Positions 1 to 53,537 of a DNA stretch of 64,000 nucleotides are shown here, piece by piece. Source of the stretch: Ranitomeya imitator (lineage: Eukaryota). Below the pieces are notes generated by a model. That model saw nothing but the letters and a program-made list of their open reading frames with translations, was not told the DNA's origin and ran no database searches. The DNA lies in NCBI RefSeq assembly GCF_032444005.1, contig NC_091288.1, forward strand, positions 218,922,001 to 218,986,000. Direction: 5' to 3'. The first letter of the stretch is position 1; every line of letters starts with the position of its first letter. Made by a program: the position numbers and the translations under genes.

Positions 1-3000
1 ACGGGGGTCTGACTGTAGATGTTCACTGTGGGGGACTCTGCGGAGAAACACCGGCCATGAGAAGGGAGGAGTCAGAGCCGGGGTCCGCAGCCCCCCGCAC
101 ATAGCACTGCCTGCTGAAATACTCTGTGCTGCTGAGGACCCTGCACTTTTCTCTATATACAGTACAGACCAAAAGTTTGGACACACCTTCTCATTTAAAG
201 ATTTTTCTGTATTTTCATGACTATGAAAATTGTACATTCACACTGAAGGCATCAAAACTATGAATTAACACATGTGGAATTATAGACTTAACAAAAAAGT
301 GTGAAACAACTGAAATTATGTCTTTTATTCTAGGTTCTTCAAAGTAGCCACCTTTTGCTTTGATGACTGCTTTGCACACTCTTGGCATTCTCTTGATGAG
401 CTTCCAGAGGTAGTCACCAGGAATGGTTTTCACTTCACAGGTGTGCCCTGTCAGGTTTAATAAGTGGGATTTCTTGCCTTATAAATGGGGTTGGGACCAT
501 CAGTTGTGTTGTGCAGAAGTCTGGAGGATACACAGCTGATAGTCCTTCTGAATAGACTGTTAGAATTTGTATTATGGCAAGAAAACACCAAGGTTACTTA
601 CTGGTAGCCGGTTTTTCCGGAGCCCATGACAGCACACCTGAGAGAGGGATCCGCCCAGTCGGGACAGGAAACCTACCGAAACAAAAGGGCGGTACCTCTC
701 CCTCGCTTCAGTTGGTTTTCAGAGCATGAGAGGCCCCCTTGGTTAGTACACATGGTAATCCATCACCACATTATAATAGTAACAAAAAACACCCAACTAA
801 AAGTGCGCACCAAAGGGTGACAAAAGAAGGGAGGGAATATACAGGTGCTGTCATGGGCTCCGGAAAAACCGGCTACCAGTAAGTAACCTTGGTGTTTTCC
901 CGTCTCCCATGACAGCACACCTGAGAGATTTTTGGAGAAAGGAACACCTTAGGGAGGGACCACCGCTTGCAGCACCCTTCTACCAAAGGTAAGGTCAGAT
1001 GAGGAGGATAGATCTAGCCGGTAGTGTCTAAAGAAGGTAAACTGTGAGGACCAGATAGCGGCCTTACAGATTTGATCAATCGATACCTCTGCTTTTTCTG
1101 CCCAGGAAGTAGCCACGGCTCTGGTGGAGTGAGCCTTGATGCCTTCAGGGATCGGGGCACCACGAGAAGCATAGGATAAGGAAATGGCCTCCCTAATCCA
1201 CCTAGCAATAGTACCCTTGGATACCCCATATCCCTTCCTGCTACCCTGGAAAGCTATAAATAAGGATTGATCTTTCCTCCACTGACTAGTCAGAGATATA
1301 TACTGCAAAATAGCTCTTCTTACGTCAAGCGTATGAAATTTCTCTTCCCCTGGGATCTTAGGATTATTACAGAAAGAGGGCAACACAATTTCTTGACTCC
1401 TATGGAATTTAAGAACTACTTTCGGCAGATATGCCGGATCCGGTCTGAGCACTACTCTATCATCAAATATCTGCGTGTAAGGAGGGGAGATAGACAGGGC
1501 TTGCAAGTCACTCACCCTACGGGCTGATGTCAATGCTACCAGAAGTACTGTCTTAAGAGTGAGTATTTATCGATGATTCCTGCAAGGGTTCAAATGGATC
1601 ACCAGTCAGAGCCTCTAACACCAGATTCAAATCCCATGGAGGAACCCTCTGAATTATTACTGGTCTAGACCTACTACATGATTTTATAAAGCGGGACACC
1701 CATCTATTGGAGGCCAGATTACAATTATACAAGGCTCCTAATGCCGACACTTGCACCTTGAGCGTATTAGTTGCTAACCCTAGCTGCAACCCCGCCTGTA
1801 GGAATTCTAAAATAGTACCCACAGGAGCCCTGTCCCCCACAGGTTGCCCCGAAAATTCCAGAAACCTTTTCCATGTTCTGCCATATATCCTTGATGTTAC
1901 TGGCTTTCTACTTTTTAACAAGGTGGAAACTAACCCTGGTGAAAACCCCTGCCTACTCAGTAATGCCCTCTCAAATTCCAGGCTGCAAGATGGAAGCCTT
2001 TCACTTGAGAGTGGCATATTGGACCCTGAGTAAGCAGGTCCGGAATCTCTGGCAGAATCCATGGATCGGTCACTGACATTTGTCTCAGGAGGGAGAACCA
2101 AGGTCTTTTTGGCCAGAATGGAGCAATAAAAATTACTCTCGCCTGCTCCATTCTGATTTTTCTTACTACCGTCGGAATCATCGCTATTGGTGGAAACACA
2201 TATGCGAGGCTGAAATTCCATTGTATTTGGAGAGCATCTACCGCGAAGGGTTTTTCTCTTGGATCTAGTGAACAGAAGCTCTCTACCTTCCTGTTGCTTA
2301 GGGTGGCAAATAAATCTATGACAGGTAAGCCCCAAGCCTGCACTATCTGTTGAAACACCCGGGGATTCAAAGACCACTCTCCTTGCCTCAGTGTTTTGCG
2401 ACTTAGGTAGTCTGCCTTTATATTCTCGACCCCTTTTATATGGAGAGCCGAGAGAGATAGTAGGTGGCGCTCCGCTAGTTGTAGGAGGACAGATGCTGAC
2501 TTCATCAGGGAAGGGGATCTCGTCCCCCCTTGGTGGTTGATGTATGCAACAACTGCGTGATTGTCCGACATGACCCTGGTATGATGACCCTGGAGGATGG
2601 GAAGGAAATGTTTCACAGCTTTTTCTACTGCCCATAACTCTCTTAGGTTTGACGCTTGTTGTGATTCTAAATGGGACCTAGATCCCTGAACTGAGAGTGT
2701 CCCCAAATGAGCTCCCCATCCTGAACCGCTTGCGTCTGTGGTGATGACCTGGTCTATTGGAGTTATCCACTGGACCCCTGATGTCAAATGGTCTCTTATG
2801 GTCCACCATTTTAGGGAATCTGTTACCTCTAATGAAAGGCGTAGCTTTCCCTCTAAATGCCCTTTTAACCACCTCTGCGCTGACAGGACCTCCCATTGTA
2901 ATTGTCTTAGACGGAACTGTGCCCATCTTACTGCGGGTACACAGGACGTCAGAGATCCCAACAGGGACATTGCCCTTCTCAATGTCATTGCGGGGTGATG

Positions 3001-4284
3001 AATCGCTGACTCTACAAGATTTTGAATTTTGATCAGCTTGTTTTCTGGCAAAAGACAAAGCTGACACCTGGAATCCAGGACTAAACCCAGAAAAGATTGC
3101 ACTAGCTCCGGCATCAACCTTGACTTGGCAAGATTTATTTTCCACCCCAACCGCTGTAGCGTTGATAAGACTGGTTCTATTTGTGTTTGGCAATGTGTTG
3201 ATGAGTTCCCTATTATGAGGAAGTCGTCCAGATACGGAACTATAACCACATTCTGAGAGCGGAGGAAAGACATGACCTCTGACCAGTGGCGTAACTACAA
3301 AGTGAGGGGCCCCGATGCGAACTTTCAAATGGGGCCCCCCCCGCGCCAAAATATTTCCCACCGAAATTCACATTTTCCCTATTCATTTCGCACACTATAG
3401 TTGTGTTGCAATGTTGTGTAGTCTGACCTAATACTGCCCTGTACTCGCTGAGAAAAATGATTTTATAACTAACATGTCCCTATAGTAATATGTCCTCCCT
3501 CGCTCTAATTCCAAGCGCACTCCCGGCGTTTGAACTCTGTGTGCTGTTTCTTCCTGGTATGATGCTGCAGTGCGTCATTTCCAGACCTGTGCAGTGTGGG
3601 GTGTATTGGGTGTACTGGTTGGCTCTGGAGCATACGCACTGCACATTCTGACACTGGCAAGTACACGCAATACTCCCCCACAGTGCACATGCTGGGCTCT
3701 GCCCACAGCCGTGTACAGCCCGTACACACATGGCTTCGCTCCGAGAACCCGTACACACACAGCTCCGCTCTGTACACCTTGTACACACGCGGCTCTGCTC
3801 CCTACACCTTGTACACACGCGGCTCCGCTCCGTACACCTTGTACACACGCGGCTCCGCTCCCTACACCTTGTACACACGCGGCTCCGCTCCCTACACCTT
3901 GTACACACGCGGCTCCGCTCCGTACACCTTGTACACACGCGGCTCCGCTCCGTACACCTCTTACACACGCGGCTCCGCTCCATACACCTCTTACACACGC
4001 GGCTCCGCTCCTTACACCCCATACATACACGAATCCGCTCACCTCTTTCACCCTCGGCTCAGCTTTGTATACCTCGTACACACCTGACTCCGCTCCGTAC
4101 ACCTTGCTCCACTACGCACATACACGGCTCTGCTCCGTACACCTTGTACACACACGGCTCTGTTACATAAACATCCCCTCATTCAGCACCATGACAATCA
4201 AGCACAGCAGAGTCCTGCATAGTGCATACACTGAGGCCACTGATCATGTGACCCCTGACTCCTCCCCTCCTGTGACCTCATCAC

Positions 4285-23700: not shown

Positions 23701-26700
23701 TGGAGAATAGAGGGGTCTGGAGGTCATATAGGGGTCTGCTGAGGACAGAGTGGTGCATGGAGAATAGAGGGGTCTGGAGGTCATATAGGGGTCTGCCGAG
23801 GACAGAGTGCTACATGGAGAATAGAGGGGTCTGGAGGTCATATAGGGGTCTGCTGAGGACAGAGTGGTGCATGAAGAATACAGGGGTCTGGAGGTCATAT
23901 AGGGGTCTGCTGAGGACAGAGTGCTGCATGGAGAATAGAGGGGTCTGGACGTAATATAGGGGTCTGCTGAGGACAGAGTGGTGCATGGAGAATAGAGGGG
24001 TCTGGACGTCATATAGGGGTCTGCCGAGGACAGAGTGGTGCATGGAGAATACAGGGGTCTGGACGTCATATAGGGGTCTGCCGAGGACAGAGTGGTGCAT
24101 TGAGAATAGAGGGGTCTGGACGTCATATAGGGGTCTGCTGAGGACAGAGTGGTGCATGAAGAATACAGGGGTCTGGAGGTCATATAGGGGTCTGCCGAGG
24201 ACAGAGTGGTGCATGGAGAATAGAGGGGTCTGGAGGTCATATAGGGGTATGAAGAGGATAGTGGTAGGGGATTTAGGGATCTACAGAGGATAGAGGGGTC
24301 CAGACAACACACATGGGTCCCTCTCCTGACGGTACGCCCAGTTTTCCCCTTTCCCTCACCCCTACTTATATCTAACCCTAATGCTGATGTCGCGCCCTAC
24401 CACCACCCACCCTCCCCAACATCGGCTCCAGCTGCCACCATTACCCTCAGGAACTCCGTCTGCTCCTGTCCCTCCACGTCTTTCAGGACGCCTTCCATCT
24501 GACCGAGCTGCTCCACATAATGGGCCAAACTTTTCCGTTCACCCAGCAGGGCTCCGGAGGCGTTTATCTCCGCTTTGTCAGCTTCTCGAAATAGTGAGTT
24601 CTGCATGATGTCCAGATAGGAGCGCATGGAGTTCAGCTGATCCCGCACACTGGACTTAAAGCGGGAAACTGTGTCCTGTAATGTGAAATATACACTGCTC
24701 AAAAAAATAAAGGGAACACTAAAATTCCACATCCTAGATATCACTGAATGAAATATTCCAGCTGTAAATCTTTATTCATTACATAGTGAAATGTGTTTAG
24801 AAAAATAAAACATAAAAATGATCAACGTAAATCACAACTAATATCCCACGGAGGTCTGGAGTTGGAATGATGCTCAAAATCAAAGTGGAAAATGAAGTTA
24901 CAGGTTGATCTAACTTCATTGGAAATGCCTCAAGACGAGGAAATGATGCTCAGTGGTGTGTGTGGCCTCCACGTGCCTGTATGACCTCCCTACAACGCCT
25001 GGGCATGCTCCTGATGAGGCAGCTGATGGTCTCCTGAGGGATCTCCTCCCAGACCTGGACTAAAGCATCCACCAACTCCTGGACAGTCTGTGGTGCAACG
25101 TGACGTTGGTGGATGGTGCGAGACATGAGGTCCCAGATGTGTTCAGTCGGATTTAGGTCTGGGGAACGGGCGGGCCAGTCCATAGCTTCAATGCTTTCAT
25201 CTTGCAGGAACTGCTGACACACTCCAGCCACGTGAGGTCTGGCATTGTCCTGCATTAGGAGGAACCCAGGGCCAACCGCACCAGCATATCGTCTCACAAG
25301 GGGTCTGAGGATCTCATCTCGGTACCTAATGGCAGTCAGGCTACCTCTGGCGAGCACATGGAGGGCTGTGCGGCCCTCCAAAGAAATGCCACCCCACACC
25401 ATTACTGACCCACTGCCAAACCGGGCATGCTGAAGGATGTGGCAGGCAGCAGATTGCTCTCCACGGCGTCTCCAGACTCTGTCACATGTGCTCAGTGTGA
25501 ACCTGCTTTCATCTGTGAAGAGCACAGGGCGCCAGTGGCGAATTTGCCAATCCTGGTGTTCTGTGGCAAATGCCAAATATCCTGCACGGTGTTGGGCTGT
25601 GAGCACAACCCCCATCTGTGGGCGTCGGGCACTCAGACCATCCTCATGGAGTCAGTTTCTAACCGTTTGTGCAGACACATGCACATTTGTGGCCTGCTGA
25701 AGGTCATTTTGCAGGGCTCTGGCAGTGCTCCTCCTGTTCCTCCTTGCACGAAGGCTGAGGTAGCGGTCCTGCTGCTGGGATGTTGCCCTCCTGCGGCCCC
25801 CTCCACGTCTCCTGGTGTACTGGCCTGTCTCCTGGTACTGCCTCCAGCCTCTGGACACTACGCTGACAGACACAGTAAACCTTCTTGCCACAGCTCGCAT
25901 TGATGTGCCATCCTGAATGAGCTGCACTACCTGAGCCACTTGCGTCGGTTGTAGAGTCCGTCTCATGCTACCACGAGTGTGAAAGCACAACCAACATTCA
26001 AAAGTGACCAAAACACCAGCCAGAAAGCATTGGTACTGAGATGTGGTCTGTGGTCCCCACCTGTAGAACCACTCCTTTATTGAGGGGTCTAGATAATTGC
26101 CAATAATTTCCATCAGTTGTCTATTCCATTTGCACAACAGCATGTGACATTGATTGTCAATCAGTGTTGCTTCCTAAGTGGACAGTCTGATTTCACAGAA
26201 GTTTGATTTACTTGGAGTTAGATTCTGTTGGTTAAGTGTTCCCTTTATTTTTTGAGCGGTGTATATCAAACCCATAGAGAAAAGGGGGCTGCGGATGGGG
26301 GAGGGGTAACATGAACGGGACAGTGGTATAATCATCAGGAGATGCTGGATGTATATGTACCACATATAGAAGATCTGAGGACAGGTGTATGGTGCAGGTA
26401 ATGACGGGGGCAGCGACCACCAGCACTGACCTTCACTTCAGACACCTGTCTGTCCAGCAGAGCCACTGTCTTCTCCTTCCGTAATCGTGCTTCCTGCAGG
26501 AGAACCTGCTGCTGGGGAAGTTGTCTCTAAAAAGAAATATAATACGTCAAAACCTCATACCATCCTGTATTATACTCCAGAGCTGCACTCACTATTCTGC
26601 AGGTGCAGTCACTGTGTACATACATTACATTACTGATCCTGAGTTACCATCCTGTATTATACTCCAGAGCTGCACTCACTATTCTGCTGGTGCAGTCACT

Positions 26701-37873: not shown

Positions 37874-40800
37874 ATGAGGATGAAGACGGTGAGGGACCTC
37901 CTGCTCCAGGCCCTGGAGAACTTGGAAAATAAATCCTTTAAGAAGTTTAAGAACAAGTTAAATGATTGGGATATAGAGGAGGAATATGCCCGGATCCCGA
38001 GAGGGCCGCTGGAGGTGGCGGACCCCGAGGACGTGGCGGACCTGATCAGACGGTATTACATGGATTCCTATAGCGTGAAGGTAACCGTGGCCGTGCTAGA
38101 AGCCATAAACGAGAACCGTGAGGCGGAGGAGCTGGAGAAAGCCTGGAAGACGGGTAAGAAGCGGAGAATCTGGGAAGAAGATGTTACTATGAGGGACAAT
38201 AGTACAAGGGGGTCCCGGAGGGGGCAGCGGAGCAGACACGGGATGTAGCTCTTAGGCTATGTGCACACGTTCAGGATTTCTCGCAGAAAATTCCTGAGAA
38301 AAACCGGACATTTTCTGCAAGAAAACCTCATGCGTTTTTGCCGCGGTTTTTTCCAGACACTTCCCAGTGCATTTTGTAGTGGGAAATTCGCAAAAAAAAC
38401 ACAAAATTAATGAACATGCTGCGTTTTTTTACCGCGATGCGGTTTTTTTTTTCGCAGAAAAAACGCATCATGTGCACAAAACATGCGAAATTCATTCTAA
38501 ATGATGGGATGCTTATTGTATGCGTTTTTTTTTTGCGGTTTTATAGCATTTTTATCGGGAAAAACCGCGAAAAAACCGCAACGTGTGCACACAGCCTTAG
38601 GCCGGGTTCACGTTAGCGTTATTGTGCGCAGCGTGTGATCCGCATACATCATGCGTACTTATCTTTAAGGCTATGTGCACACGTTGCAGATTATTTGCGG
38701 TTTTCTAGCGTTTTTGCGCTATGAAAACGCTATAAAACCGCAAATAATCTGCATACATTAAGCATCCTATCATTTTTAATGAAATCCGCAATTTCTGTGC
38801 ACATGATGTGCGTTTTTCCGCATGAAAAACGCATTGCGGAAAAATAATGAACCTGCTCATTAATTTTGCGTTTTTTTTTTCGCGGTTTTCCCACTGTCTA
38901 ATGCATTGGGAAATGTCTGGAAAAAAACGCATCAAAACCGCGCAAAAAACGCGCAAAAAAAACGCATGCGGATTTCATGCGGAAATCTGCCAGAAATGTC
39001 CGGAGTTTCACAGGAATTTTCTGCATGAATTCCTGAACGTTTGCACATAGCCTAACATGGTGTACGCAGGGACACGCGTATGCATGCGTCATTTCACGGT
39101 GTGCGGCGGATTCCAGCGAACGCAACATGTTGCATTTTTTGAGGCGTCAAATATTGCGCATGCGGATGAGCGCGTCAAAAAACCGCATTATTGTCTATGG
39201 GAACGCATTGGTACGCAAAGACATGCATACCTTAGACTGCGCATGTCCAGGAAATGATGTCACCACCTCCACCGTGCACGTAAAAAACGCAAACACATTT
39301 TAACGCATGCACACGCAGCGTTGTTTTTTTTTTTTTTTTTGTGTCATGCGTAAGATGATGCGGAGGCGCATGCAGATGACATGCTGCGCACAGAAACGCT
39401 AATGTGAACCTAACCTTAGTAAAGCCATCGTGGTACAGACGATGGAGATGTCACCAGAAGGAAGAAAACGTCTCCAGCAGCGACCCTGAACCTCCGTGTC
39501 CAAGGAACAAAATCAGATAAAGCCTCTGTTCACACGCTGCGCTTTTGCTGCTGCATTTTTTTCACAGGCAAAACCTGCTCTCCCGGCAGTAAAGAAGCTG
39601 CTTACAAAATGCCGATTTTGCAGATTTTTTTGCTGCATTTTTGTTGTCTCTCGTACATGATGATAAAGTTTAGTGCCCCCCTAAAAAAAAAAAAAAAAAA
39701 GTTTAACTTCCTTAGGTTTTTGCGCCAAAGCCTGATCCCTGTGGTTTTTGCTGCGTTTTTGCACTAACCCATTGTTTCCTATGGGTGAAAAAAAACGCGG
39801 AAAGAAGTGACCGCTGCAGTTTTCCGAATCAGTCAGGAAATTAAACCCAATGTGGGGTCATGGGATTTCTGAAATCTCAGGCTTTGCTGGTGCTGTAAAA
39901 AGCAGCTGAAAATTTGCATTAAAAAAAAAGGATGCAAAAACGCCCAGTGTGAACATAGCCTTATCTATACAACAAATCAATATTCTGACTATGACCCGAT
40001 CTGTGTGCCAAATCCGGGACCTGGCTACTTATCAGGAGAGCCGGGGCTCGGTGTTATCAGTGTATACACTACATCACATATACAGTGATGGTTAAAGGGG
40101 ATGTCCCCGCTGAAAAAACTCCTGCAGGCTCAGATACATGTAGAAAACATAATCTGAGCTTTACTTACCCTCCCCTGGTCCAGCACAGGACACTACTGGG
40201 CTGCAGCCAATCACTCAGCACAGCACCGTAGCTCAGTAATTGGCTGCAGCGCTACTGACGTGATTTCACCGCTGCAGCCAAACAAAAGAATGCAACTTGT
40301 TAATTCTCACCTGACTTCTGCGGAGAGTCCAGTCATCTGCATTCAGATTTTTTACATAAACTTTTTTTTTTACATATTTTTTTTACCCGTAGAGCGGACG
40401 TGCGTCATCAGTACATGAAGCGGGCTGTGTTACACAGATGGCACCTGAGAGCGACAGCTGCAGAGCTGGGTCTGATCGCAACCAAGCGACAGCTGCAGAG
40501 CTGGGTCTGATCGCAACCAAGCGACAGCTGCAGAGCTGGATCTGATCGCAACCAAGCGACAGCTGCAGAGCTGGGTCTGATCGCAACCAAGCGACAGCTG
40601 CAGAGCTGGGTCTGATCCCAACCAAGCAACAGCTGCAGAGCTGGGTCTGATCCCAACCAAGCGACAGCTGCAGAGCTGGGTCTGATCGCAACCAAGCGAC
40701 AGCTGCAGAGCTGGGTCTGATCGCAACCAAGCGACAGCTGCAGAGCTGGGTCTGATCCCAACCAAGCGACAGCTGCAGAGCTGGGTCTGATCGCAACCAA

Positions 40801-43800
40801 GCGACAGCTGCAGAGCTGGGTCTGATCCCAACCAAGCGACAGCTGCAGAGCTGGGTCTGATCCCAACCAAGCGACAGCTGCAGAGCTGGGTCTGATCGCA
40901 ACCAAGCGACAGCTGCAGAGCTGGGTCTGATCCCAACCAAGCGACAGCTGCAGAGCTGGGTCTGATCCCAACCAAGCGACAGCTGCAGAGCTGGGTCTGA
41001 TCGCAACCAAGCGACAGCTGCAGAGCTGGGTCTGATCGCAACCAAGCGACAGCTGCAGAGCTGGGTCTGATCCCAACCAAGCGACAGCTGCAGAGCTGGG
41101 TCTGATCGCAACCAAGCGACAGCTGCAGAGCTGGGTCTGATCCCAACCAAGTGACAGCTGCAGAGCTGGGTCTGATCCCAACCAAGCGACAGCTGCAGAG
41201 CTGGGTCTGATCGCAACCAAGCGACAGCTGCAGAGCTGGGTCTGATCCCAACCAAGCGACAGCTGCAGAGCTGGGTTTGATCCCAACCAAGCGACAGCTG
41301 CAGAGCTGGGTCTGATCGCAACCAAGCGACAGCTGCAGATAAAGGCCTAAAAAATAATACGGACAACCATAAAGAATAAAAAGTGTTCATTTTTCGGTTG
41401 GTCAGGCTTCGTGGGAACTTGTTTTTTTTTGCCACTGATCTGACTTTTTTATTGATACCGTTCTCATCTAGATACAATGTTTCTTATTGCACTTTTTGCG
41501 GAGTTGCGTTTTTTTCCTTAGCGGTCAGGTTAATTAATTTGATGAGGAGATATCAAACGTTTAATTTTTTTTGGTTTATTTTAAATGAGGGGGAAGAATA
41601 CTTTTTTTTTTTTTTTAACTTTTTTTTGTTCACTTTATTTGTGAAATCTCAGCCTGTGATCGTCAGATGGATTGTACCATATACCGCAATACTATAGTAA
41701 GAATAATCGTGGAGTCTTATGAACACCAGTCATAGGTTGGTCTTCATAGAAGCACGGGGGTCTTCATAGAAGCACGGGGGTCTTCCTCTGGGGCCACCTG
41801 GAGGTCCTATATTTACAGTCGGAGCATGCGGATTCATTCTGGGCATAAACATGGGCAATGCCGGTTTATACTACGGATAATGCGCACTTTCTCTGTCCGG
41901 ACAGTAGAGGGCAGGCGCGCGTCGTACTGACTTCATTGTGATTGCCTCCTCTGTTACCCTATCATCATGGAAATGATCAGATCAGGAGCCGCTGGGGTCT
42001 TTCTGCACTGTTGTGTGGACACTGTGGTCAGCAGTTATCAAAAATGGCGTAACCTGCTCCGTTATTACTTACTAAAGAGAATCCGTCAGCAGGTTTTTGC
42101 TATGTAATCAGAGAGCAGCATGATAGAGGGGCAGCATTTATATTGTGAGGGCATCAATCCGCAATTGGGCACTGAAAGAAAAGGTGAAAGGGTGTTTGCT
42201 GGAACAATCGCCACCATGGACAGGACCACATCTCCTGTACTCCATGGGCAAGCAGGGGCAACAAACCGCAAAATCTTGGATGCAAACGCAATGATGATTG
42301 ATGGTCTTCTATCTGCAGAAACGAGTTCAGAAACTGCTGGCTGTTCTCCTGATCTCTAAATCGCTCAGTTTTCCTCTCTTTTGACTGTTATAGAATGTTT
42401 CTCCTACTTCAGTGCTATAAAAGCTTTCGGAAACTTTACAGTTTTTGATCCTTTTGAATTCAGATGGAAGGAAATTTATTTTTTACAAGTGTTCAAGAGA
42501 GTTCATGGGTAATGTAGAACGAGAGTCACGTGACAGGTTCTGGAGGAAAAAGACAAAAGAACCGCAGAGGTCGAAAGGGACCGAAAAAGTAGGCCGTCAA
42601 AACAAGAAGAAGGCACGCTTATAGAAAATATCACACTTGTGCAAATTGGGGGAAAAAGTGGAAAAACCCTTATTATAGGTGGAACATTGACTCACAGGGC
42701 AGTGTCGCTGCACATAAGGTTTCTTCCTTCTGGTAGAGAGCTAGTTTGCATACTTTTCTTCCAGAAATTATTATTTCTTCAAGAAAAACCTAGTATACCC
42801 CGATATATGCAGTCCTATGTAAGGCACAAAGTATTCCCAATAGAGTAGAGATCACAGTACTGGCGTATGAGCACGGCTTCAGCATCTTCCTCCATAGTCG
42901 TGAGCGATGACCAGTCCTGGACTCATCTCAGGGATTCTGTTTTTTTGTGTTTTTCAGTGAATTGTTGTACAACCAAGAGAGAAGATCAAGGAGCAACATC
43001 GAGAGGTGAGCAGTCCAAGAGAGAAGACCAAGGAGCAACATCGAGAGTTGAGCAGTCCAAGAGAGAAGACCAAGGAGCAACATCGAGAGGTGAGCAGCCG
43101 GAGAGAGAAGACCAAGGATCAACATCGAGAGGTGAGCAGTCCAAGAGAGAAGAGCAAGGAGCAACATCAAGAGGTGAGCAGTCCAAGAGAGAAGACCAAG
43201 GAGCAACATCGAGAGGTGACCAATCCAAGAGAGAAGATTAAGGAGCAACATCAAGAGGTGAGCAGTCCAAGAGAGAAGACGAAGGAGCAACATCGAGAGG
43301 TGAGCGGTGGCCTGGAGCCTCCTCACTATAGGTCCGAGGCCTTGATATAATCCAATAGAAAGAATGTTCTGCTTGAAATCCCGAATGTGTGTATATAGCC
43401 TTAACCCCGGTCCTGTGTCCTCCCTACACGCATACACGTTCATTGTAAGTCCCTGATAGCGCCATTATGAATTGGGGGGGAGTGGTATATGACTTTAACA
43501 GGGTCTTATGATGAAATAGGGGATGGGAGAGGATGCTATCAGGTACTTAGAAAAATTTAGACCTGGGCCCCCACCTGCATGTTGGCCAGATATATAAGCC
43601 CTCGAAGCGTTCTAGATCCTATAAAGACATATGTGTTCACCCCCATATAATTATGCTCCTAATCCTAGTCCCCTTCTTAGTATAATGTCCGACATCCTAG
43701 GCCCCTTCTTAGTATAATGTCCTCCACCTGGGCCCTTTTATGGAATATTGTCCCCCAACCTGGCCCCTTCTTAGTATATTATAATGTCCTCCACCTGGGC

Positions 43801-44420
43801 CCCTTCATGGAATATTGTCCCCCATCCTGGGCCCCTTCATACCCTAAGGTATTGAATACAATTATTTAAAAAAAAGAAAAATATAGATAGAATTTCTCTA
43901 AAACGAACATGAGATGCTCTACTCATCACAATGTAACATTACAGCCCTCCATGTCTGGACTCACCGCTTCTCTTCATTTTGATCTTTTATTTCAGCACCG
44001 ATTCAGGAAACATCTCGGGGAGCGACATGCTGAGGTGAGAGGAGGAGGAGGAGAGGCTCCTTGTAAATCGTATCAGTCTCATCGAATAGTGAAGTCACTC
44101 ATATAGGTGACTGTCGGGGACGGAGGACGATCATTAATCTCATAGCTTCTGTTCTCATTACAGATCAGGAGCATTTTGTGGACAGACATCGCGCTCAGCT
44201 GATACAGCGGGTGCATCTTCTGGGCCAAGTCCTGGACGACCTCCTTCAGAACAAGCTGCTGACATATGAAGGCTACAACACCGTGCTCAGCATGAAACCC
44301 TCCCAGCAGCAGATGCGAGAGCTCTACCGATACATGTCATCCTGGGGGAATAAAGACAAGGATAAGTTCCTGCAATCTCTGAAGACACACTACGCTCCGC
44401 TCATCAAGACTCTGGAGTAG
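37874..44420 (+). CDS. pycard: PYCARD/ASC-like gene: PYD exon 37874-38153, candidate linker exons 42464-42508, 42958-43005 and 43996-44034 (stop-containing), CARD exon 44164-44420
   Basis: PYD: MKTVRDLLLQALENL...FKKFKNKL...RIPRGPL...DLI...Y, ending in phase 1 at a GTAAG donor (38154). CARD: EHFVDRHRAQLIQRV...MRELY...LE*, after a phase-1 acceptor at 44162-44163. The gene is divergent from trim72, as human PYCARD and TRIM72 are. Linker exon usage is inferred. Confidence 0.85.
38255..39415. mobile_element. Cluster of PIF/Harbinger-type MITEs: 38255-38596, then 38600-39415 with 38669-39052 nested inside it
   Basis: TIRs GGCTATGTGCACACG and GGCCGGGTTCAC with 3-bp TTA/TAA target duplications. Confidence 0.8.
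39521..39960. mobile_element. PIF/Harbinger-type MITE
   Basis: agcctctgttcacac...gtgtgaacatagcc, flanked by TAA and TTA. Confidence 0.65.
40455..41338. repeat. 35-bp minisatellite in pycard intron 1
   Basis: Unit gcgacagctgcagagctgggtctgatcgcaaccaa. Confidence 0.95.
42972..43305 (+). repeat. 42-bp tandem repeat (8 units) spanning the exon 3' end and splice donor of a pycard linker exon
   Basis: The unit encodes GEQSKREDQGATSR. GAG|GTGAG donors recur every 42 bp. Confidence 0.9.
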
Positions 44421-44530: not shown

Positions 44531-44536
44531 AATAAA
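44531..44536 (+). terminator. Candidate polyadenylation signal after the first CARD exon
   Basis: AATAAA 110 nt after the TAG. Confidence 0.55.
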
Positions 44537-44639: not shown

Positions 44640-45670
44640 TCGCTGTGACCAGTGGGGTACCGCAGGGGTCAGTATTGGGACCTGTTCTCTTCAACATATT
44701 CATTAATGATCTGGTAGAAGGTTTACACAGTAAAATATCGATATTTGCAGATGATACAAAACTATGTAAAGCAGTTAATACAAGAGAAGATCGTATTCTG
44801 CTACAGATGGATCTGGATAAGTTGGAAACTTGGGCTGAAAGGTGGCAGATGAGGTTTAACAATGATAAATGTAAGGTTATACACATGGGAAGAGGGAATC
44901 AATATCACCATTACACACTGAACGGGAAACCACTGGGTAAATCTGACAGGGAGAAGGACTTGGGGATCCTAGTTAATTATAAACTTACCTGGAGCAGCCA
45001 GTGCCAGGCAGCAGCTGCCAAGGCAAACAGGATCATGGGGTGCATTAAAAGAGGTCTGGATACACATGATGAGAGCATTATACTGCCTCTGTACAAATCC
45101 CTAGTTAGACCGCACATGGAGTACTGTGTCCAGTTTTGGGCACCGGTGCTCAGGAAGGATATAATGGAACTAGAGAGAGTACAAAGGAGGGCAACAAAAT
45201 TAATAAAGGGGATGGGAGAACTACAATACCCAGATAGATTAGCGAAATTAGGATTATTTAGTCTAGAAAAAAGACGACTGAGGGGCGATCTAATAACCAT
45301 GTATAAGTATATAAGGGGACAATACAAATATCTCGCTGAGGATCTGTTTATACCAAGGAAGGTGACGGGCACAAGGGGGCATTCTTTGCGTCTGGAGGAG
45401 AGAAGGTTTTTCCACCAACATAGAAGAGGATTCTTTACTGTTAGGGCAGTGAGAATCTGGAATTGCTTGCCTGAGGAGGTGGTGATGGCGAACTCAGTCG
45501 AGGGGTTCAAGAGAGGCCTGGATGTCTTCCTGGAGCAGAACAATATTGTATCATACAATTATTAGGTTCTGTAGAAGGACGTAGATCTGGGTATTTATTA
45601 TGATGGAATATAGGCTGAACTGGATGGACAAATGTCTTTTTTCGGCCTTACTAACTATGTTACTATGTTA
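44640..45670 (+). mobile_element. 5'-truncated CR1 LINE: RT C-terminus (ORF 44645-45565) plus 3' UTR
   Basis: Motifs SGVPQGSVLGPVLFNIFINDL, FADDTKL, LGLFSLEKRRLRGDLI and RGHSLRL. The element ends in a short tandem tail (actatgttactatgtta). Confidence 0.93.
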
Positions 45671-51264: not shown

Positions 51265-51355
51265 TAGGTCTTCTCCTTTCCTGGTTTCTGCAGGAAATAC
51301 TACAACCCGAGCATAGGACGGCGAACGCATTCTACGTGCGGAGGACCCTCCAGAC

Positions 51356-53537
51356 ATGGCCGGTAAGTGCACAAAGTTCCTGCATCCAGCAGTCCGTGTC
51401 TGTTGATGGACTAATACTTGTATCTAGGGAATGCCACATAGTACAGCTCAGTCAGCATATATTTATGCACAACATAGCACAGAAAATTTTTTCTCTATAC
51501 TATGTTGTGCATAAATATGTGATTCTTCAGAATTTCTTTTAGTCTTTGCCTGATGAAGAGACCTGTGTAGTCTCGAAAGCTGCAATTTGTTACCATCTTT
51601 TCAGTTAGCCATTAAAAAGGTATCAACCACTGAGGACTCTCAATTCCAAATATTTTTTTGTACAAAAATACACATCCCTGTATATATAGTGTACGGTACA
51701 TACACTAAAAGCCTAAGAAAAACTAGAACGGGGCTCTAGAACCGGAGAACCATGCTCAACTCAAAGGTGAGCAAAAATGCTGTGACTTTTGGATTTTTCA
51801 CACAAGCCCCCGGTCAGATCAACCAAAGTGAGGAGCGCATGAGCAGGATGGGACGGAGCAAAGACCACCCAACAAATTCTTCAAAAGTTACTCCACTTTG
51901 ATAATAAAACGGAGCGCACCATAGTGTAATACTGTTAAGGTGAAGAGAAAAAAAAACATAAGTGTAAACTAACCCTATGTACAGTTGTGCTCAAAAGTTT
52001 ACACACCCCGGAAGAATTTTTGCTTTCTTGGCCTTTTTGTCAGAGGATATGAATGATAACACCAAAACCTTTCCTCCACTCATGGTCAGTGGTTGGGTGA
52101 AGCAATTTATTGTCAAACTACTGTGTTTTCTCTTTTTATCATAACGACATCCTACAGCTCTGCTCTGCTCCAGTCCCTCATCCTGCGGCTCTGCTCCCCT
52201 CCCGCATACTGCGGCTCTGCTCTCGTCCCACATCCTGCGGCTCTGCTCTGCTCTGCTCCCGTCCCGCATCCTGCGGGTCTGCTCCTCTCCCGCATCCTGC
52301 GGCTCTGCTCTCCTCCAGTCCCGCACCCTGCAGCTCTGCTCTGCTCACGTCCTGCGGCTCTGCTCTCCTCCAGTCCTGCACCCTGCAGCTCTGCTCTGCT
52401 CCCGTCCCGCATCCTGCAGCTCTGCTCTGCTCCCGTCCCGCAACCTGCAGCTCTGCTCTGCTCCCGTCCCGCATCCTGCGGCTCTGCTCTGCTCCCGTCC
52501 CGCATCCTGCAGCTCTGCTCTCCTCCAGTCCTGCACCCTGCAGCTCTGCTCTGCTCATGTCCTGCATCCTGCAGCTCTGCTCTGCTCACGTCCTGCATCC
52601 TGCGGCTCTGCTCTCCTCCAGTCCCGCACCCTGCAGCTCTGCTCTACTCACATCCTGCGGCTCTGCTCTCCTCCAGTCCTGCACCCTGCAGCTCTGCTCT
52701 GCTCCCGTCCCGCATCCTGCAGCTCTGCTCTGCTCCCGTCCCACATCCTGCGGTTCTGCTCTGCTCCTGTCCTACATCCTGCGGCTCTGCTCCATTGATA
52801 ACTCATTAAGTAGCGCGCCTCATCTTATTACTACATGCCCATCAGTAAGACTTAACGAGCCCAACGTGTTTGTTGTCTGTTACCATGGAGACACATTGTT
52901 TGTGGTCTGTTACCGTGGAGACACATCCAAGCATATAAAATCTGCATCAAATCCGCTGGGTGTGCATGTGGCTCATAGCGTGAGGAGGCAGAGGAGCAGT
53001 CAGCCTCAGAATGCACAGGATGTGGTGTCAGACAACCTCACACTCCAGACAATGCAGTGAGGCCGGAGTCATTGATCATAGCGGAGTCCTAAAGGCACAG
53101 ACCTTGGCCTATACCAGAGACAACAAATTGCAGGCAAGAATTCCATAATTCATCAGGAAAGCACAATTATCTTATTATTTCCATGAAAGGTCTTTAGCGG
53201 CAGAGATGACAGAGTTATTACTGTCACACGAGGGAAACAGATTTGACAATATTTTCCAATTGCAGGAATTACAGATAAGGAGCATTTTGTGGACAGACAT
53301 CGCGTCGCACTGATAGGACGGGTGGTTTTGGTGGATCCGATCCTCGATGATCTCCGTCAGTGGAGGCTGCTGACAGGTGAACACTACGACACGGTGCGAA
53401 GCAAGACGACCTCACAGGAGAAGATGCGAGAGCTCTACCGTCACGTGGATTCCTGGGGAAATAAAGACAAGGATTGCTTCCTGCAATCTCTGAAGAAAAA
53501 TAACCCGCCACTCGTCAGGGATCTAGAAAGGGACTAA
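51356..53537 (+). CDS. CARD-only protein with an ASC-type CARD, about 89 aa: exon 51356-51362 (ATGGCCG) plus exon 53275-53537 (alternative acceptor at 53266 adds 3 aa)
   Basis: cagacATGGCCG|GTAAGT has a good Kozak context and a consensus phase-1 donor. It joins ttacAG|AT AAG GAG CAT to give MADKEHFVDRHRVALIGRV...MRELY...LVRDLERD*. This CARD is 53/85 identical to the first CARD by manual alignment. Confidence 0.72.
51543..51612 (+). ncRNA. Candidate minimal hammerhead ribozyme in a Penelope-like repeat remnant
   Basis: CTGATGA (51550-51556), stem II GAGAC/GTCTC (51558-51574) and GAAA (51575-51578). Stems I and III are only weakly paired. Confidence 0.5.
51980..52140. mobile_element. Tc1-like terminal fragment
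   Basis: TA followed by CAGTTGTGCTCAAAAGTTTACACACCCC, a Tc1-type TIR start with no partner. Confidence 0.65.
52150..52795. repeat. CT-rich minisatellite, about 26-31-bp unit
   Basis: Repeated ctctgctctgctcccgtcccgcatcctgcag-like units. Confidence 0.9.

Follow-up and report, generated by a model that had tools for sequence, protein, structure and literature searches.

A gene of the ASC type lies on the plus strand of the window, by which we mean the whole stretch of 64,000 nucleotides of Ranitomeya imitator DNA that was analysed (Table 1). Two R. imitator proteins map on the window residue for residue: CAJ0922047.1 of GenBank (P0015, 278 aa) and XP_069591770.1 of RefSeq (P0045, 'pyrin-like', 404 aa). 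The PYD exon is identical to residues 1-93 of both proteins. Its PYD matches the PYD structures of ASC, pyrin and POP1, with E values of 1e-14 to 1e-12 for the ASC structures, and it keeps the KKFK.KL and IPRG motifs, which were aligned to the positive patch of ASC (Lys21, Lys22, Lys26 and Arg41, as these residues are named in PMC2887861). As in ASC/PYCARD, an N-terminal PYD detected by Pfam is followed by a CARD in the same gene, and the gene is grouped with frog ASC proteins in a tree. Repeats are found in and around the gene. The first intron contains a 35-nt tandem array (25 copies, 97% alike, 40450-41339), which gives spurious long ORFs on the minus strand, and the poly(A) signal of the gene is directly followed by a retroelement fragment encoding reverse transcriptase at 44645-45565 (Pfam RVT_1, E=1e-14). 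Other transposon remnants in the window are an RT/RNase H sequence at 1957-3273 and a DDE_3 transposase at 24950-25615. The preliminary description of this DNA had assumed synteny with TRIM72. This was left unconfirmed, as a quick Pfam scan, run on the ten longest ORFs of the window outside repeats, gave only transposon or repeat matches and no TRIM72 domain.

The tree was built from the PYD and the first CARD of 29 frog ASC proteins and revealed three dendrobatoid ASC paralog clades (A, B and C). The window gene belongs to clade A, where its sister is XP_077130184.1 (P0009) of R. variabilis, with support of 100/99 and branches of equal length. Intact ASC genes of clade B (P0028) and clade C (P0033) are present in R. 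imitator as well. In Anomaloglossus baeobatrachus, at least four tandem clade-A ASC copies lie on one chromosome (P0001, P0013, P0014, P0008 and P0003 loci), and one of them spans ~59 kb. Changes between R. imitator and R. variabilis were polarised by three outgroups. The CARD has about two changes derived in R. imitator and one to three derived in R. variabilis, and thus gives no sign of relaxed constraint in R. imitator, although these counts are too small to separate a very recent stop from continued translation of the CARD. Our literature search gave no paper that deals with ASC paralogs of frogs, with PYD-only forms or with this gene. Transcript-derived R. imitator ASC of any clade was likewise absent from the protein collection (queried with the PYD ORF, P0001 and the CARD exon). 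This absence is uninformative on expression, because the clade-B ASC of R. imitator is also present there only from NCBI genomes.

Table 1. Features of the clade-A ASC gene in the window (a slash within a motif marks a splice junction).
Feature	Position	Strand	Description
PYD exon	37874..38153	+	280 nt, ATG to ACG G/gtaaga; 93 codons and 1 base; Pfam PYRIN, E=3.1e-20
48-nt linker exon, to first array donor	42958..43005	+	product V-NCCTTKREDQGATSR; orthologous to VNCRTTKREDQGATSR of R. variabilis P0009
48-nt linker exon, RefSeq version	42958..43215	+	through the array to the sixth donor, GAG/GTGACC; residues 94-179 of P0045 map here
42-nt tandem array	42973..43305	+	Tandem Repeats Finder, period 42, 7.9 copies; eight donor positions
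39-nt linker exon	43996..44034	+	product A-PIQETSRGATC-stop, phase 1; from the sequence and homologous 13-aa exons in frogs
GC dinucleotide, RefSeq donor	44029..44030	+	CAT/GCTGAG; residues 180-190 of P0045 correspond to 43995-44027, and a split Tyr codon comes next
In-frame TGA	44031..44033	+	final full codon of the 39-nt exon; a single G, then the junction
Intron between 39-nt exon and CARD exon	44035..44163	+	129 nt
First CARD exon	44164..44420	+	phase 1; 84 codons and TAG at 44418-44420; Pfam CARD, E=5.6e-16 (44178-44420); identical to the CARD of P0015 and P0045
Weak GT donor	44417..44418	+	GGA/GTAGAC, overlaps the TAG stop; RefSeq splices the CARD exon onward here
Poly(A) signal	44531..44536	+	AATAAA, 111 nt past the TAG of the CARD exon; its use would make the CARD exon terminal
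Exon-like stretch	51294..51363	+	encodes KYYNPSIGRRTHSTCGGPSRHGR; matches the peptide joining CARD1 and CARD2 in R. variabilis and Bufo models (P0009, P0011, P0012)
Second CARD exon	53268..53534	+	last coding exon of the 404-aa RefSeq model; tblastn and mapping of P0045

Between the PYD and the CARD lies a linker region that has expanded into an array. The 48-nt linker exon is the first of eight units of the 42-nt array, each of which has its own donor copy. Among the donors of the array, the second is destroyed (GAG/TT) and the sixth is weakened (GTGACC), and the seventh unit contains an in-frame TAA (43239-43241). CAJ0922047.1, which comes from another R. imitator assembly, reads Gln (QGATSR) where the window has this TAA. 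This implies a C/T difference between the two assemblies, due to polymorphism or to a mistake in one assembly. The models of R. variabilis, D. tinctorius and P. terribilis have one array unit only, and the expansion of the array looks specific to R. imitator as far as these sequences go. The 3' end of the 39-nt exon (GGAGCRACAT...GAG/GTGAG) is common to the array units, and their likeness suggests an old duplication of one unit. The preliminary description had also counted a 45-nt exon in the linker. We examined eight AG/45 nt/GT candidates that are open in phase 1 (the best at 42464-42508); none of them matches the linker of an orthologue or the RefSeq model, and the exon was dropped.

The 39-nt linker exon was read directly from the sequence. 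Its acceptor is strong and polypyrimidine-rich (...attttgatcttttatttcag/C, also written ...gatcttttatttcag/), so that 43996 is its first base, and its donor is a strong GT (GAG/GTGAGA), which puts the first base of the intron at 44035. The PYD exon leaves one base and the CARD exon opens with two bases of a split codon; the 39-nt exon is thus phase-symmetric and reads, in phase 1, (G)CA CCG ATT CAG GAA ACA TCT CGG GGA GCG ACA TGC TGA G. This reading agrees with what had been noticed earlier, namely a phase-1 symmetric exon with strong splice sites and a TGA one base before the junction. An AG 11 nt inside the exon was considered as an internal alternative acceptor and rejected from the sequence, because the resulting 28-nt exon shifts the CARD frame.

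The same exon is present in other frogs. Eight clade-A orthologue models, which come from four other species of poison frog, have a 13-aa exon product between the linker and the CARD, and use of the exon was counted in nine protein models and two transcripts. Orthologous 13-aa exons occur in P0001, P0007, P0008, P0009, P0013, P0014, P0016, P0018, P0029, P0002 and P0021, and P0010 has a 12-aa version. The clade-A linker consists of two pieces, which match the 48-nt exon and the 39-nt exon of the window. In R. variabilis, the full linker is VNCRTTKREDQGATSR / APIQETSRGATCG / DQEHF, and P0009 reads ...QGATSR/APIQETSRGATCG/DQEHF across the junctions. The second piece is APIQETSQGATSR in P. terribilis, APIQETSGATSR in D. 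tinctorius, and APIQETSPEATPG and variants in the four copies of Anomaloglossus. A 13-codon homologue is also present at this place in L001 and L002, two frog transcripts assembled from public RNA runs. Because this 13-residue exon recurs in orthologous and paralogous frog ASC proteins, the AG...GT pair that bounds it in R. imitator is not a chance occurrence. On this comparison of gene models and transcripts, the homologues show that the 39-nt stretch is a real linker exon of 13 codons, conserved in the ASC genes of hyloid frogs, and the genuine coding exon proposed earlier is borne out. Furthermore, the exon is annotated as a cassette in the clade-B paralog of two other species, and only there. 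R. variabilis isoforms X1 (211 aa) and X2 (198 aa) differ by exactly these 13 residues, and so do the 218-aa and 205-aa isoforms of Anomaloglossus. Since the 13-aa exon is an annotated clade-B cassette in two species, inclusion and skipping are both plausible for the exon of R. imitator.

The stop codon is not shared with these relatives. When APIQETSRGATCG of R. variabilis is compared with APIQETSRGATC-stop of the window, all 12 other residues of the exon are identical (12/12), and R. variabilis has Gly where the window has TGA. The codon aligned to the TGA encodes Gly in R. variabilis and Anomaloglossus and Arg in P. terribilis and D. tinctorius, and it is AGA, as the last codon of the exon homologue, in the two frog transcripts. 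A comparison with other species had been proposed earlier; it finds Gly, Arg or Glu at this codon, and the stop was seen in no other species examined. The stop must be young, because the sister species R. variabilis has Gly at that codon. Judged from these alignments, the species comparison shows that the TGA is specific to the R. imitator lineage and young. The idea that it arose from CGA by a single step stands as far as the single step is concerned, but other histories, GGA>TGA and AGA>TGA among them, are as parsimonious as CGA>TGA; AGA is the codon in distant frogs, and the sister species encodes Gly. The exon is real, with working splice sites and an in-frame stop, as expected of a stop-bearing cassette exon. 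In a regulated poison exon, the stop would be conserved among relatives, and here the other species encode amino acids at this position. We also considered whether the TGA might be recoded as selenocysteine or by programmed readthrough. Apart from the codon being TGA, nothing points in this direction: a search with Rfam at gathering thresholds gave 0 matches in the whole window (neither SECIS nor any other family), and the relatives have Gly or Arg at the codon, not Cys or Sec. To our knowledge, UGA GAU, the context after splicing, is not a readthrough context. We regard recoding as extremely improbable.

Both public R. imitator models avoid the TGA, one by a GC donor and the other by skipping the exon, and neither states that the exon carries a stop. 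XP_069591770.1 runs through the array to the sixth donor, then uses an exon cut to 33 nt (43996-44028) and splices at CAT/GCTGAG, which gives ...RGAT-Y-QEHF. If this RefSeq reading were right, with its donor at 44028/44029 and a 33-nt exon (APIQETSRGAT-Y), the gene would encode a CARD-bearing protein and no truncated product. GC-AG introns exist, XP_069591770.1 maps exactly on the window together with this junction, and the 33-nt version may rest on reads behind the model. Real GC donors are normally near-perfect at their other positions. The flanks of CAT/GCTGAG are not near consensus, as only 3/9 positions fit CAG/GTAAGT, and the site lies 6 nt upstream of the strong GT donor GAG/GTGAGA, which is far nearer to the donor consensus and is the choice of the R. 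variabilis model. A protein-guided aligner that saves the frame would explain the junction equally well. We therefore judge the RefSeq reading to be improbable; to go by the donor motifs, its GC donor is most likely a frame-saving annotation artefact.

CAJ0922047.1 also runs through the 42-nt array and goes from there straight to the CARD, skipping the 39-nt exon. This could mean that the exon is no longer used in R. imitator, in which case it would always be skipped, only a linker-short ASC would be made and the TGA would be silent. The same exon is skipped in the annotated clade-B isoforms, and human ASC-b is a working adaptor after skipping of the linker exon (PMC2887861). Constant skipping is nevertheless unlikely. 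Both splice sites are strong and undamaged, four other species have the exon in their clade-A models, and the skip in CAJ0922047.1 may be only the predictor avoiding the stop. The way in which the two models are built also bears on the reality of the TGA. It is real in this assembly, as the RefSeq model, which is mapped exactly on the window, has to avoid it. An error of assembly or sequencing, or a rare allele of the sequenced animal, would agree with the nearby difference between the two R. imitator assemblies (TAA at 43239-41 and Gln). Against it, the RefSeq model built on this very sequence needed a way round the stop, the exon is avoided in the older annotation too, and the change is a substitution outside any homopolymer. 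An error or a rare allele is therefore very unlikely in our estimate.

The reading that we prefer is a conserved exon with a recent TGA whose inclusion would give a PYD and linker without a CARD; as the best explanation overall, it receives a probability of about 0.55 from us. According to this reading, transcripts containing the 39-nt exon would be spliced as in the sister species, with the strong acceptor and the GT donor kept and the stop one base before the junction. If the exon is included with its strong GT donor, the protein has to end after the PYD and the linker. The single PYD and CARD reading frame of the mRNA is then broken, and it survives only if the exon is skipped or the weak GC donor is used. 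The inclusion product would consist of the PYD and a disordered linker, and a CARD-bearing protein would need skipping of the exon or use of the very weak GC donor 6 nt upstream. The predicted inclusion product has 121 aa (93 + 16 + 12) with the first array donor and 191 aa (93 + 86 + 12) with the sixth, and skipping with the first array donor is predicted to give a PYD-linker-CARD protein of 194 aa. The sizes of 136 aa for the stop form and 209 aa for the skip form proposed in the preliminary description give way to 121 and 194, because the 45-nt exon that they include has no support in orthologue or RefSeq models. We infer exon inclusion, the truncated product and its stability from the DNA sequence. 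Since the KKFK.KL and IPRG motifs are kept, the truncated product may plausibly still engage other PYDs.

The fate of such transcripts depends on what follows the first CARD. A stop within 50-55 nt of the last exon junction escapes NMD. The earlier proposal that the TGA lies at the last junction, and hence escapes NMD, is upheld if the CARD exon is terminal, with the AATAAA 111 nt past its stop, but fails if this exon is spliced on to the second CARD. Such onward splicing creates a junction ~380 nt past the TGA, so the transcripts would be expected to be NMD targets. The first CARD is joined to the second CARD in the RefSeq model of R. imitator and in models of R. variabilis, D. tinctorius and P. 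terribilis, as well as in two Bufo models. The RefSeq model of R. imitator has the order PYD-CARD-CARD (404 aa) and uses a low-complexity exon at 52159-52278, not the KYYNPSIGRRTHS exon at ~51294 (KYYNPSI...). Because models in R. imitator and other frogs splice the first CARD on to the second, the downstream 'CARD-only' exon, taken earlier for a gene of its own, may not be an independent gene.

A PYD-only form ending at this place has a precedent among frog gene models. The 'pyrin-like' protein P0003 of Anomaloglossus baeobatrachus (129 aa, an annotation model) has a clade-A PYD and both linker exons, lacks a CARD and ends just after the 13-aa exon. Unlike the R. imitator gene, it ends by read-through of the exon donor into the intron (GERKTRGSL-stop) and not by a stop within the exon. 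Read-through of the 39-nt exon donor in the window (44035-44067) gives GERRRRRGSL-stop, which is homologous to the P0003 tail. A PYD-only form ending just after the 13-aa exon is therefore already annotated in another frog, by another route.

That the exon can be skipped, and that the frog has two more intact ASC paralogs, probably explains why the nonsense change is tolerated. Two views of the truncated product were considered. The first is early decay of a redundant paralog, in which the stop would be a loss-of-function lesion, fixed or segregating, and the truncated product a by-product without a selected role. R. imitator has genes of three ASC clades, the stop is absent from all other species examined, and in the same gene the 42-nt array has run away, its seventh unit contains an in-frame TAA, its second donor is destroyed and the protein start is altered (MRMK in R. 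imitator vs MGK). However, the PYD and CARD frames are intact, the branch lengths equal those of the sister species, and skipping of the exon still gives a full adaptor. Decay is possible, but we consider it somewhat unlikely. The second is a splice-switchable clade-A ASC paralog, in which inclusion of the exon would give a stable POP1-like PYD-only inhibitor and skipping an ASC adaptor. We regard this role as unlikely, and no likelier than a lesion that is tolerated because the paralog is redundant. A POP-like inhibitory function, and the 'split ASC' that was suggested for this locus, are speculation for the R. imitator gene.

Human ASC is among the closest known systems. It also has a short phase-symmetric linker exon between the PYD and CARD exons, and skipping of this exon (ASC-b) fuses the PYD and the CARD into a still-active adaptor; other ASC isoforms are inhibitory (Bryan et al. 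2010, PMC2887861). The linker-less human ASC-b is a weaker adaptor, and the ASC PYD expressed alone forms filaments (PMC2887861). Human ASC differs in having a single 57-nt linker exon with no stop, whereas R. imitator has two linker exons (48 and 39 nt), the second of which ends in TGA, so that its inclusion would remove the CARD instead of adding linker. Human POP1/PYDC1, which adjoins PYCARD (PMC7555848; PDB 2hm2, 4qob), is likewise an ASC-type PYD without a CARD at the ASC locus, and the PYD of the window matches it with E ~7e-12. POP1, unlike the predicted R. imitator product, is a separate gene derived from exon duplication, with 89-90 aa and no tail. In R. imitator, the ASC paralog itself would give rise to the product, as an isoform or a truncated form with a linker tail of 28 to 98 aa. 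POPs bind the PYDs of ASC or NLRs and inhibit inflammasome assembly; in the R. imitator product, the conserved charged-patch motifs KKFK.KL and IPRG are the one feature that would point to such binding. A PYD without an effector domain, as in POPs, is predicted only for the inclusion isoform (121 or 191 aa). The gene is no stand-alone duplicate of a PYD exon, as its own intact CARD exon lies 6 kb downstream and it is an orthologue of full-length clade-A ASC genes. There are also truncated isoforms of innate-immune adaptors, in which exon choice keeps one interaction domain and loses the next. MyD88s is a truncating adaptor splice isoform of this sort. Another is Nod2-S (cited in PMC2887861). 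Such isoforms can be dominant negative. Nod2-S and MyD88s were shown by experiment, in contrast to the R. imitator case, which is a prediction from sequence.

One direct use of these results lies in annotation: they flag a likely artefact, as the frame of the RefSeq model is kept only by an implausible GC donor. According to PMC7555848, PYD-only and CARD-only inflammasome regulators occur in humans and higher primates only, and their origin is an evolutionary question. Should the stop be no more than a lesion that a redundant paralog tolerates, the locus is a case of ordinary gene-family turnover. The locus shows a very young step that could create such a regulator: in a linker exon that can be skipped, one nonsense change close to the 3' end may have set up a switch between a PYD-only form and an adaptor. 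The lineage concerned has three ASC clades, and an extra CARD lies next to the gene. If the PYD-only function were true, the stop in a cassette exon would be a new route to a PYD-only regulator, in place of gene duplication, and together with the adjacent CARD exon it would give frogs independently evolved equivalents of the POP and COP regulators.
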